A stretch of 62,849 nucleotides of DNA, filler included, from Calcarisporiella thermophila CBS 279.70 (GCF_041956535.1; 9 parts of 9 records of this genome joined end to end with filler, not necessarily neighbours in it); one strand, 5' to 3'; counted from the first letter of the whole stretch, positions 1-45,774 are shown. Made by a program: numbers and translations. The notes: generated by a model from the sequence alone, not told the origin.

Positions 1-604
1 CATGTCAGATGAAGGTGGCATATCAACTTCAATTGACCTCAACATCATTTGAAGATTAATATTTTCGTTTATCTATTTCTATAGATAATAATATTAATGA
101 GAATCTCAGAGTATCTCCTGCAGATTTAAGAGAGTTTATTCGAAGCGAAGTGCGTGAAATGACAGGAAACCTAGGTCATTTAGCATCAAATCACGCAAGG
201 AGAGGAGGGGTCCAAATTACCTATTCAACAGGTAGAGGCAGAGGCAGAGGCAGAGGCAAAGGCAGAGGAAAGAAAATTAGTATCGAAAATAGACCGAGAA
301 GATATCAGCCAACAAGAGCAGCCAGAAAGGAAAGCAAAAATGGATAATAAAAATATATATATCGGAATTAAATAAATACCTATTATTTACTACTAATTAC
401 CTATTCGTTAAATATTCATTATTAACTCTACAAAGTGCTATCAAAAGGGGAACATAAAAGAGCATATAGAATATATGTGACGATAAGAAAACGTATAGGA
501 ACATAGAGGTTTTGTTCGGGTTTCATAATGCCCGATGTTTTCTAAACATTTTATTTATCCGAGTTTTTTGTAGGGTCACTGTATTAAAAATCAAATGGTA
601 ATGT

Positions 605-42291: not shown

Positions 42292-45200
42292 CGAAAGCTC
42301 ACTCATGGTTTGAAGGCGAGCTAACTTGAACATGTTGACATTGAATTGGTCAAGCCTGTAAAAGGGTTTTGCCTCGATAAACGGAGTCAACTTCGCCGGA
42401 ACAGCCTCGATAAACGCAGATGCGTTCCGATAATGGACCCGGTATTCAATGCGTGCCCCATAGTTTTTGGTTAATGCCATTTCCCATGCCATTTTCATCA
42501 GCTTCACTGACTTCTCCATTTTGCTGCTATAGTTGAGGACGTCTTGAATCGAAAATTTCTTCGGTCCTCTCCCCTTATCGTGGGAATACAACGACTGCTT
42601 CTCGCTCATGTATGCTTGCATGTATATGACGCCACATTGCTCCTGGATCCATTTTCGCGCCTCTGCTCTCAATCCCGCAATTTCCGAGGTGAAGCACCAT
42701 CGGTCCATTGTGCCCATTTTCATCCCCGAAAGTTTGAAAATCTCCTTGACCGCTTCTGCCTTCCAGAGCAACGTGGTGGCGGCACCCGAATTCGATTTGG
42801 GGAATATCTCTACCCCGATATCGAGGAAAAGCTTACTCTTGTCGATGGAGTCCCAGTCTATATCAGTGAGCTCTTTCCGTAACAACTCGAGAGGATTATC
42901 CATGGATGACCGCAGAATCACCTTGAGATCCTTGGCGTAAATATGGAAGAAATGATCTCGAAATACGCTAAGCTCTGCATCGGCTTCGCAACGCTTGCGC
43001 AAAGCAGAGAAAATCTGGGGCAAATACGCTCCAGGAATCCATTTGCCGCTGAAACGGAAGCCTCCTGTACCACAACTTAATCCCTGCGCAATATCGTAAG
43101 AAGGAGGGAATTGTGTGATGTCGTTGTCGGGCAATACTTCCTTTAACGCCGGCAGCATCACCTTATCATAAAAGCGTTTCAAATACTTCGCTTTTACGTA
43201 GTTGACCCACCTTCCCTTTTTACTCCGCAGTAAAGGAAGGAAAATCAACACTTTCACGCATCCGCCATCGCCACATGTCCCAAGCTCGAAGTTTGGAACA
43301 CTGCTTAGTTTCACTTCTTCTTGCTTGCCCTTGACATTTTTGATCTGAACAGTGATGTGGTTGTTAAACCGCAAGGTTGCATTCCGGTCTGGGAAAGGAA
43401 AATATTTAAGATTCCCACACACCGGCAAAGTTTGGCCCGTCCACAATATACTATCGATATCGATCGTATGTGTTAAGTCGGCCCGAGAGTAACCCATGCA
43501 TGACGCCTTGAAGGATATGGGCAAAATGGCCTTCTGATGCAATCCGGAGATGACAAGCTGCTTTCTTTTTTCTATAGTCACTTCCCTCGCCACATTTATC
43601 CATTGCTCAAGGCTAACTGCAGGGTGAACAGTTTTGAGGGCTTGATTTGTCTCTGGATAAGTGTTCGAAGATGATGGTGTTTCTGAAACGATTGGTGGCG
43701 GCGGCACAAGAACTAAATCGGCAATTGATTTGAAGTTGAATTTGCTTTTATATATTGGCCTAGAGAACAATAGAGATTAGCATCATGAGTTATTTTTCGA
43801 AGTTCATTCTAAGAAGCAATGTGTTTACCTCTTTTCTATCGAAGAGCATTGTGACTCAGCATCGGATACATCAGAATTGATGGAAATAATGGTTTGACTC
43901 TCTGAGCTATTTGCGAAAAATAAAACAGATTATTTCAATCGGAGATTATTTAGTAATATCATACACAACGAGTCTTTTTTTTTTGGTTTTTACATTACCT
44001 TTCATCCGATATAACCACCAATTCAACCCCATCAGGGACTTCCCCGCGCTCAGACCCGCAGCGGCCCGCACTAAAACTTTGGTCATAGTAACCCAAACTT
44101 GTTAAAAAAACCAAGGATCGATTTAGTAGATAGTTTCGAAGCAGAATTTTCGTTTACGTGTCTACGAAATAAAGACATTTTCGAGATCGTATGACCATCA
44201 CTCACCTGGCCTTTTCTTTCAATGCTCTAGAGATTCCCAAAGGATGCTGCCAATGAAAATAAAAATAAGTTAGACATATGATACTTTTTTTTTTGTAATC
44301 AATATCTTGCCAATTTAGCCAATGGAGCACCTAAAGCGCCATTACAAAAAACTGGTTTGTAGTTTACCTTTTCACGTTCTTCAAAACACCGAGGGGGACA
44401 ACTCTCAGCATTCAATCTATAGGCCGCAAAATCTTAGGCTCCTCTCCCTCATATCCATAGAATGCAGCTAATTACTTACTTATTTTGTTCATGGATAGGA
44501 AGTTCTTTCGACATTTCCCTTACTCTTAGCTCCGGTCCGTCGTCAAAAAGGCGAACGAACTCGGAGGTGGTAACTATGTCCCGTATCCATGCTCTGCACT
44601 GCTCCATATCGTTGTTACTTAGACAGTTGGAGATTTCAAGACCTCTTGTCACGGCATACATGAATAGCAGAACGTATACTCCGCAATCCCCACTGGTAGT
44701 TTGGCGTGGCCCATCGACCGGAATTATGTCACTTTTCCACCACCTAGCCTTCAACTGCCCATTTGTAAGTAGTTCAACGTACTCTTTCAGTTCACCCAGA
44801 TCCATTTGTCTTGGCGCGTTTCCAAGAGAGCAGTAAAAATACACTGCCAAATCCTGGGTGTCGAATAGATACGCATTCCAGTGAATATTCTCCACGTTAT
44901 TAACAAATAGGAGTTTGCTCGGCAGGTTTAGTCTCTCCGGCCATGTTCGAGGAAAGAGGGTTTTCGGATCGCGCATTTTGTGCATTTGCAGGATTGGTCT
45001 GCAATAACAATCTCCATAATAGAACGATGCACTCGTGCTCTTCTCTGCATAGTTCTGAAGTCGCGTAATAAACGCATTCATCACCTCGTCATCGAGCCAG
45101 CACCCTTCGCGAAATGTCTCAAGAGATAGTTTGGAAGGAGCAACGAATTGCACGGGTCCACTAAATAATATAGAAATAACAAAACAGGGCAAATAGTTAG

Positions 45201-45774
45201 GCAACTTTTTGAACCCCACTATTAACTGGGTTAATTGCAATAGGTGTGTACGGTTGAATGTTATCCCACACGAGCAGAAAATTGGGTGAGGAAACGGTAA
45301 AATTCCTCCCTCAAGATTTTTCCAGAGGACCACGCAGTATTCAACACAATCAACACATGGCTTACAGTAGCTCGGTACCCGCTACAATAAGTCCGCATTA
45401 TTGTGGGCTCACCTTTTATTCCCAGCGTCGGATATTGGGTTTTTTTGGATTAGTTCTCTGTCATGTTCAGACTTTGTGTTGATTGGATCAGGTTTCTTCG
45501 TATCTACAATGATTTGACAATCACTGGGAGTACTGCTTACAAGGAAAAAAAAAATTAGCAAAGTATTGCCGCAAAAAAAAAAAAAAATAAAACTTTTACT
45601 TCACCTTTGAATATGTGGGTTGTCCACGACAATTTCATTCATATTTTCATTTTCAGTCTCCATCTCAACCCATGGTTCGGTAGTGGATTCAAGTTTTTCA
45701 ACGCCAATATATTTTGAAGTACAATGGGGATGTAGATTGAGAATATGATAAAAGGGGAATTCGATTAGCAGTTC
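42292..45774 (-). CDS. Large multi-exon protein: Ulp1/SENP-like (C48) protease fused to an uncharacterised domain; putative transposon protein, both ends missing
   Basis: Ulp1 motifs WLDDEVMNAFI, IHWN, YCSLG, PRQTTSGDCGVYV. Five GT-AG introns join the protease exon in frame, through four small exons, to the ~490-codon exon ending at the contig edge. Confidence 0.75.

Follow-up and report, generated by a model that had tools for sequence, protein, structure and literature searches.

A gene of the fungus Calcarisporiella thermophila (Mucoromycota) raises the question of whether an Ulp1 protease fused to an unfamiliar enzyme domain marks a new type of transposon. The window is the whole stretch of DNA that was analyzed (62,849 nucleotides), and the locus lies at 42292-45774 (3,483 bases). 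This segment is the start of scaffold MU987620.1 and is identical to L001:1-3483. Its minus strand is filled by one gene of 8 exons, all 7 introns are GT-AG, and no repeats of note were seen within 42292-45774. The original prediction, made by a model from the sequence, had spliced the gene by hand, joining an Ulp1 exon in frame to a region of ~490 aa. The independent NCBI model VTP21DRAFT_9699 (P0001) agrees with this splicing, and the ~490-aa region corresponds to exon 8, with 489 codons.

Database searches were run exon by exon, and the NCBI model served for coordinates. Exon 1 (45605..45663, minus strand, as are all features of the gene) carries the start codon at 45663 and encodes an acidic, low-complexity N-terminus (P0001 residues 1-19). 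Exon 2 (45413..45532; residues 20-59) has GT-AG introns on both sides. Exon 3 (44480..45160) encodes an Ulp1/C48 SUMO-protease domain, which matches PF02902 with E=1.3e-6, above the Pfam curated cut-off, and the yeast Ulp1 structure 1euv with E=4.9e-6. The catalytic His (44883), Asp (44862), and Cys (44685) are intact, together with the oxyanion Gln (44703), and the proposed fusion of an Ulp1 protease to the core domain is confirmed. Linkers are encoded by exon 4 (44368..44416; residues 288-303), exon 5 (44206..44246), exon 6 (43999..44097; VELVVISDE), and exon 7 (43829..43906; Ser-rich and acidic). By eye, a homologous exon to exon 5 lies upstream of paralogue L002, where exon 6 is kept too. 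Exon 8 (42292..43759) stays open to the edge of this segment and contains the predicted Rep_trans-like domain at about 43480-42365.

Exon 8 is cut by a scaffold gap of 5,358 N (L001:3484-8841), beyond which the frame resumes for 324 aa. These residues are colinear with paralogue L002, and therefore essentially no coding sequence is missing at the gap, which may hide an inserted repeat. The whole Ulp1-core protein would be about 1,190 aa long. The NCBI model ends in a short exon before the gap that is probably spurious. The sole candidate end feature of this copy is a hairpin at L001:10203-10261, 390 nt past the stop codon. It has a 14-bp perfect stem (z -7), overlaps an 18-nt palindrome, and is a candidate end or origin of the element.

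The core domain has no match in Pfam, PDB sequences, or the ESM Atlas, and a word-index protein search found just the gene and one paralogue. A large protein search returned 400 homologue clusters at 50% identity. The named homologues are all fungal (Calcarisporiella, Cladochytrium, Coniophora, Suillus, and Ceratobasidium) and span Mucoromycota, Chytridiomycota, and Basidiomycota; most of the rest come from metagenomes or SRA data and are unnamed. Pattern-based searches of IMG/VR, prokaryotic genomes, and phages, which are of limited sensitivity, gave no core-domain relatives. The names that NCBI gives to homologues P0130, P0157-P0163, and P0101 ('alpha-1,3-glucan synthase ags1', 'capsular polysaccharide export protein') appear wrong.

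Core residues are numbered from window position 43578 on the minus strand. The motifs that had been quoted for this region are all present, with the Asp of FLDIGVE at 42822, the Tyr of QAY at 42612, and the Glu of RIEYR at 42447. Mean column identity of the aligned core domains is 17%, yet D40, K219, D253, Y323, R376, and E378 are invariant across the 112 aligned domains. D42 (99%), S43 (97%), and R380 (95%) are also highly conserved in this alignment. The combination of D42, D253, Y323, R376, and E378 is kept in 92 of the 93 homologues that span the full domain. Conservation of the D/E/Y/R-x-E residues in homologues, which had been suggested as a check, is 99-100% and far above the domain average. 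The core is followed by a C-terminal domain of ~320 aa, common to at least 66 proteins, in which no polar residue is invariant.

The N-terminal part of the family is variable. Ulp1 is found in 10 of the 47 long homologues, with weak matches in others; the nearest relatives have it, basidiomycete members match it weakly, and some homologues have no N-terminal module. SIR2 takes the place of Ulp1 in three proteins (P0046, P0060, and P0061). The Ulp1 domain would be an accessory module that can be swapped, its place being taken by SIR2 in some relatives. A USP-like protease region was noticed by eye at L013:707-1500, for which Pfam and PDB gave no confirmation.

The AlphaFold2 model of the core domain is of high quality (pLDDT 94.8, pTM 0.92). 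Its best whole-domain matches among 48,161 PDB chains in VIA-align are two Rep_trans structures, RepDE (4cwc; Z 6.1, rmsd 5.5, 169 aligned) and RepSTK1 (4cij; Z 5.7, rmsd 5.0, 189 aligned). They stand at ranks 2 and 3, after a 68-residue helical match. TBP, whose curved sheet is common to Rep_trans, is listed with Z 4.7. A second structural comparison placed 4cij_B first, at Z 5.5, and the row after it scored 3.9. The Z values of 5.5-6.1 from these curved-sheet comparisons lie below the 7-8 that unrelated models often reach with this tool, and by themselves they prove little. Foldseek against PDB and viral models returned nothing at E<=0.001, with 4cij at E 0.38. The top viral-fold rows include Inoviridae proteins, one of them named G2P replication protein (E 0.01-0.05, not significant).

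By sequence, the core protein is not a member of PF02486, as that model was unmatched by the query and by all 112 members. Profile comparison by hhalign with 14 Rep_trans proteins gave probabilities <1%, which are not significant. The best local pairs, equally non-significant, set Y323 with RxYxK and D253 with RLDxA. Other enzyme classes were also looked for. The fold lists contain no RNase H-fold, HUH, or tyrosine-recombinase structure. No conserved HUH motif is present, no histidine being conserved in more than 62% of the family, and a DDE core gave neither a Pfam match nor an RNase H-fold row. Tyrosine-recombinase/DUF3435 domains had no Pfam match in the full-length homologues, and the model is a beta-sheet fold. 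The Pfam results, fold lists, and histidine conservation are all in line with the remark that no DDE, HUH, or YR motif is evident.

The metal ligands of RepD are D46, D142, and E214, and its nucleophile is Y191 (PMC4797284). The alignments of the whole-domain model start at model/Rep positions 35/39 (RepDE) and 34/1 and 33/0 (RepSTK1), which would place D42 on D46 of RepD and D9 of RepSTK1. D42 (43455) belongs to the DIDS motif (43450..43461, minus strand), in which the invariant D40 lies at 43461. Residues 246-386 were folded alone to bring the alignment ends to the other motifs. Positions 4..141 of this half-domain model align to RepDE 138..222 (Z 4.7, rmsd 3.3, 78 aligned), at rank 6 and level with unrelated folds. 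The alignment sets D253 on D142 and R376/E378 on R212/E214. D253-x-G/A255-x-E257 (42808..42822, minus strand) would thus equal D142-x-A144-x-D146 of RepD, with D253 as second metal ligand, and R376-x-E378-x-R380 (42439..42453, minus strand) would equal R212-x-E214, with E378 as the third. The register is read from alignment end-points and assumes that the terminal strands hold no gap. So read, the model has D42, D253, and E378 on three separate strands in register with the Rep ligands. This exact register of the acidic residues gives the fold match more weight than Z alone.

The proposed nucleophile is the invariant Y323 (42612), within Q321-x-Y323-xxx-K327 (42598..42618, minus strand). In the model it ends strand 317-324, the last one before the R-x-E strand 375-382. 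Its likely equivalence to Y191 comes from this strand order and the non-significant profile pair, not from the end-points. The basic residues R140, R189, and K193 of RepD are not kept in place: position 251 is Y/F/V, position 321 is Q (71%), and a K stands at Y+4 (78%). R189 and K193 of RepD matter for religation. Compared with RepD, D40, K219 (42922..42924, minus strand), and R380 are additional invariant or near-invariant residues. K219, K327, and R380 may stand in for R140, R189, and K193, with K219 replacing one of these basic residues.

The Rep_trans reading of the original prediction finds support and can be taken further. The D/D/Y/R-x-E residues are in predicted register, and DIDS, to which no role had been given, would supply the third ligand (D46), but R140 and the R-x-Y-x-K surroundings are absent. 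The remark that the spacing is longer than in RepD also holds: the first and last motifs are about 370 residues apart, against about 190. As for the enzyme, Rep structures top the whole-domain matches and the motifs are conserved, but the scores are middling and the profile and Foldseek results are non-significant. Taken together, the model and alignments indicate that the core domain very probably has a Rep_trans-like active site. The predicted fold does not look unrelated to Rep_trans, the motifs are conserved, and the gene is not single-copy, the three points on which the original prediction was most exposed.

The C. thermophila genome contains four paralogues (P0001-P0004), with 34-60% identity to the query. 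One of them, L002, is decayed: a stop interrupts it, and it carries an insertion and a short tandem duplication; it is apparently truncated upstream and adjoins unrelated host genes. A count of copies had been proposed, and in this genome the gene proves to be multi-copy with one copy decayed. Codon-position differences between paralogues are 91/61/162, with the third position changed most.

Young copies come from Ceratobasidium, where the homologue has ~22% identity to the protein encoded in the window. Eight proteins at least 90% identical are encoded on different chromosomes of two Ceratobasidium AG-Ba assemblies. Their loci share a unit that is 99.4-99.9% identical and starts sharply at a common short motif, on the other side of which lie four different flanks. 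It was for the Ceratobasidium homologue alone that near-identical copies were seen dispersed and sharing an end. The unit runs for >24.7 kb, a span in which its far end was not reached, and no empty site was found for it. A right end at L003:19334 was ruled out because other copies run past it. At the left end, a supposed TIR element of 2.2 kb was likewise rejected, since its inverted match is just 10 nt long and it lacks a target duplication. A perfect 40-nt palindrome lies 300 nt inside the sharp end. Two identical perfect 40-nt palindromes occur at L003:1713-1752 and 1890-1929, 178 bp apart, whereas L005 and L006 have one and lack the spacer.

The 13-nt left-end motif and a 14-nt subterminal word are common to the unit and a hAT-like element (L004:19587-22114). 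This element, recognized as hAT by eye and blank in Pfam, is inserted in some Ceratobasidium copies. Because the end motif is common to both, the sharp end of the unit may have been made by another transposase. The motif was not found near the second Ceratobasidium subfamily or in Calcarisporiella. In two distant Ceratobasidium subfamilies the same partner gene is retained upstream of the core gene and transcribed divergently from it (L003:4670-7269 and L017:7291-9652, both minus strand). The first exon of the partner resembles DUF3723, a ParB-like Starship auxiliary gene (Atlas score 0.96). In all 10 long-contig loci (L002-L010 and L017; six independent contexts), the core gene is oriented towards whichever end of the chromosome or scaffold is nearer, and eight of the 10 lie within 80 kb of that end. 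This orientation fits either subtelomeric recombination or one-ended copying to the telomere.

The claim of a mobile element has indirect support. The gene is multi-copy, with decayed and young copies and one sharp end, but that end may belong to the hAT-like element, and neither a far end nor an empty site was found. For these reasons, self-mobilization is something we infer and not something read directly from the loci. The core family looks mobile, and the transposon reading is likely.

Four other explanations bear on these data. A Rep_trans-fold nickase could be a passenger or helper of large DDE (hAT-like) composite elements, or could have been multiplied by subtelomeric duplication. The end motif and subterminal word common to the hAT-like element suit a passenger, as does the DUF3723-like partner, an auxiliary gene in Starships, and the end-ward orientation and position suit the subtelomere, where ectopic recombination multiplies DNA. 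Yet no hAT transposase is kept beside the gene at L001, L002, L013, L014, or L017, and it is the core protein itself to which Ulp1 is fused. The catalytic residues do not vary, and the copies, hundreds of them in three phyla, are diverged and often stand alone; both points suit an autonomous enzyme better, and the passenger or duplication explanation is possible though unlikely. It is quite unlikely that the Rep_trans match is a coincidence of curved beta-sheets and that the core is some other metal-dependent nuclease or transposase with a D-D-E triad and a structural tyrosine. Middling Z values, the want of a significant Foldseek or profile match, and Bet v1/START-like folds close behind speak for coincidence. 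On the other side, Rep_trans was predicted before the structural search and both Rep structures top the whole-domain rows. The predicted register is exact for the three acidic ligands and R212, and RNase H-fold, HUH, and tyrosine-recombinase structures are missing from the lists.

The core could also start the replication of a circular DNA in fungi, plasmid-like or virus-like, that integrates only now and then. Every characterized Rep_trans-fold protein is an initiator of replication or transfer for a plasmid, phage, or ICE, and many homologues are intron-poor and on metagenomic contigs of 3-7 kb. One contig (L015:1-1757) has a 55-nt terminal overlap with a small hairpin at the junction, but it carries just the first half of the domain and may be a circle, a tandem repeat, or an assembly artefact. 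The seven spliceosomal introns of the window's gene, the chromosomal copies, the lack of a match in the viral, phage, and prokaryotic pattern searches of limited sensitivity, and the absence of any capsid or partition gene seen nearby make a replicon improbable. Finally, domestication as a host gene with a settled cellular function, e.g., at telomeres, would account for the intact Ulp1 triad, the spliced structure, the third-position excess, and the subtelomeric bias. Patchy lineage-specific paralogues, the decay of one copy, the dispersal of near-identical copies among different flanks, and variable N-terminal modules make domestication very improbable.

The explanation that best covers the data, and is probably correct, is a fungal transposon moved by a non-HUH tyrosine nickase of the Rep_trans fold. 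The gene would encode the protein that mobilizes a group of fungal DNA elements not yet described, with a core that acts as a Rep_trans (TBP-like fold) tyrosine transesterase. D42, D253, and E378 would bind a divalent metal that activates the DNA phosphate. Y323 would then nick one strand at the element end, probably at a hairpin, and remain covalently attached. Host replication would displace the nicked strand, and the reverse reaction would join it to the target. Movement would be of the copy-and-paste, rolling-circle kind known from Helitrons, Replitrons, and IS91, but its enzyme would not belong to the HUH class. Ulp1 probably counters SUMO-dependent silencing or repair. A wider proposal, that DNA transposons with a Rep_trans/TBP-fold tyrosine nickase, unrelated to HUH, DDE, and tyrosine-recombinase enzymes, form a major eukaryotic group of their own spread through early-diverging fungi and basidiomycetes, is about evenly balanced between acceptance and doubt; some members would be giant, carry DUF3723, and perhaps copy one-endedly telomere-ward.

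Rep_trans proteins of PF02486 include pT181 RepC/RepD, RepSTK1, CTX RstA, and the MOB_T relaxases. They resemble the core in the predicted TBP-like sheet, in three acidic ligands on separate strands, and in the order and register of D / D-x-A/G-x-D/E / Y / R-x-E. They differ in that the fungal protein has no detectable sequence similarity to them and has long insertions, and its gene is spliced, chromosomal, and fused to Ulp1/SIR2 and the 320-aa C-terminal domain. Ulp1 passengers are carried by MULE and KDZ/Zisupton DNA transposons. CryptonF and CryptonS likewise carry a passenger C48 protease, either next to the mobilizing enzyme or fused with it (PMC3212892). These Ulp1-carrying transposons use tyrosine recombinases or DDE-type transposases, neither of which was detected in the fungal family. 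Helitrons and Replitrons, eukaryotic rolling-circle transposons (PMC10288648), resemble the fungal family in its likely mechanism, with a tyrosine nickase, copy-and-paste movement, hairpins near the ends, and no long TIRs seen. Their enzymes are HUH-fold, with a helicase in Helitrons, unlike the fungal family, which has no conserved HUH motif or helicase. Starships (10.1101/2021.12.13.472469) are similar to the Ceratobasidium relatives in large size (>24 kb) and a DUF3723-like gene. No DUF3435 tyrosine-recombinase captain was seen in the fungal family, and Ceratobasidium and the other hosts lie outside Pezizomycotina.

A Rep_trans fold recognized by structure only has a precedent in Rep-Arvir / DUF7845, which has three acids and one essential tyrosine in a divergent motif (PMC13107129). 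That protein is archaeal, contains a wHTH domain, and replicates viruses and plasmids. As of April 2026, Rep_trans-fold initiators were reported in bacteria and, newly, archaea only (PMC13107129). Eukaryotic DNA transposons use DDE, tyrosine recombinase, or HUH enzymes, and Ulp1 is known as a Crypton passenger (PMC3212892, PMC10288648). The literature searched, whose coverage lies outside Repbase and subscription journals, held no eukaryotic Rep_trans element. If mobilization is confirmed, the family would stand outside the known transposon groups; if not, it would still extend a known enzyme fold to eukaryotes. If correct, this reading brings the Rep_trans fold to the third domain of life and adds a new enzyme class to eukaryotic transposition. 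It also gives a function to hundreds of 'hypothetical' or misnamed fungal proteins, points to large cargo-carrying elements outside Pezizomycotina, and offers a new single-strand nicking and joining enzyme.

Several loci contain nested mobile DNA. The labels hAT, CACTA, pogo, and USP were assigned by eye and are unconfirmed by Pfam and PDB. The nested segments are L005:1-1586, the left 3 kb of the unit in L004, L007 from 15610 onward, L008:16509-18945, L017:3001-6304, and L002:1-1748. They comprise CACTA-like and pogo-like remnants, Ty3 and copia LTR elements, a Tc1-type DDE_3 gene, and a 2.4-kb insert with 85-bp direct repeats.
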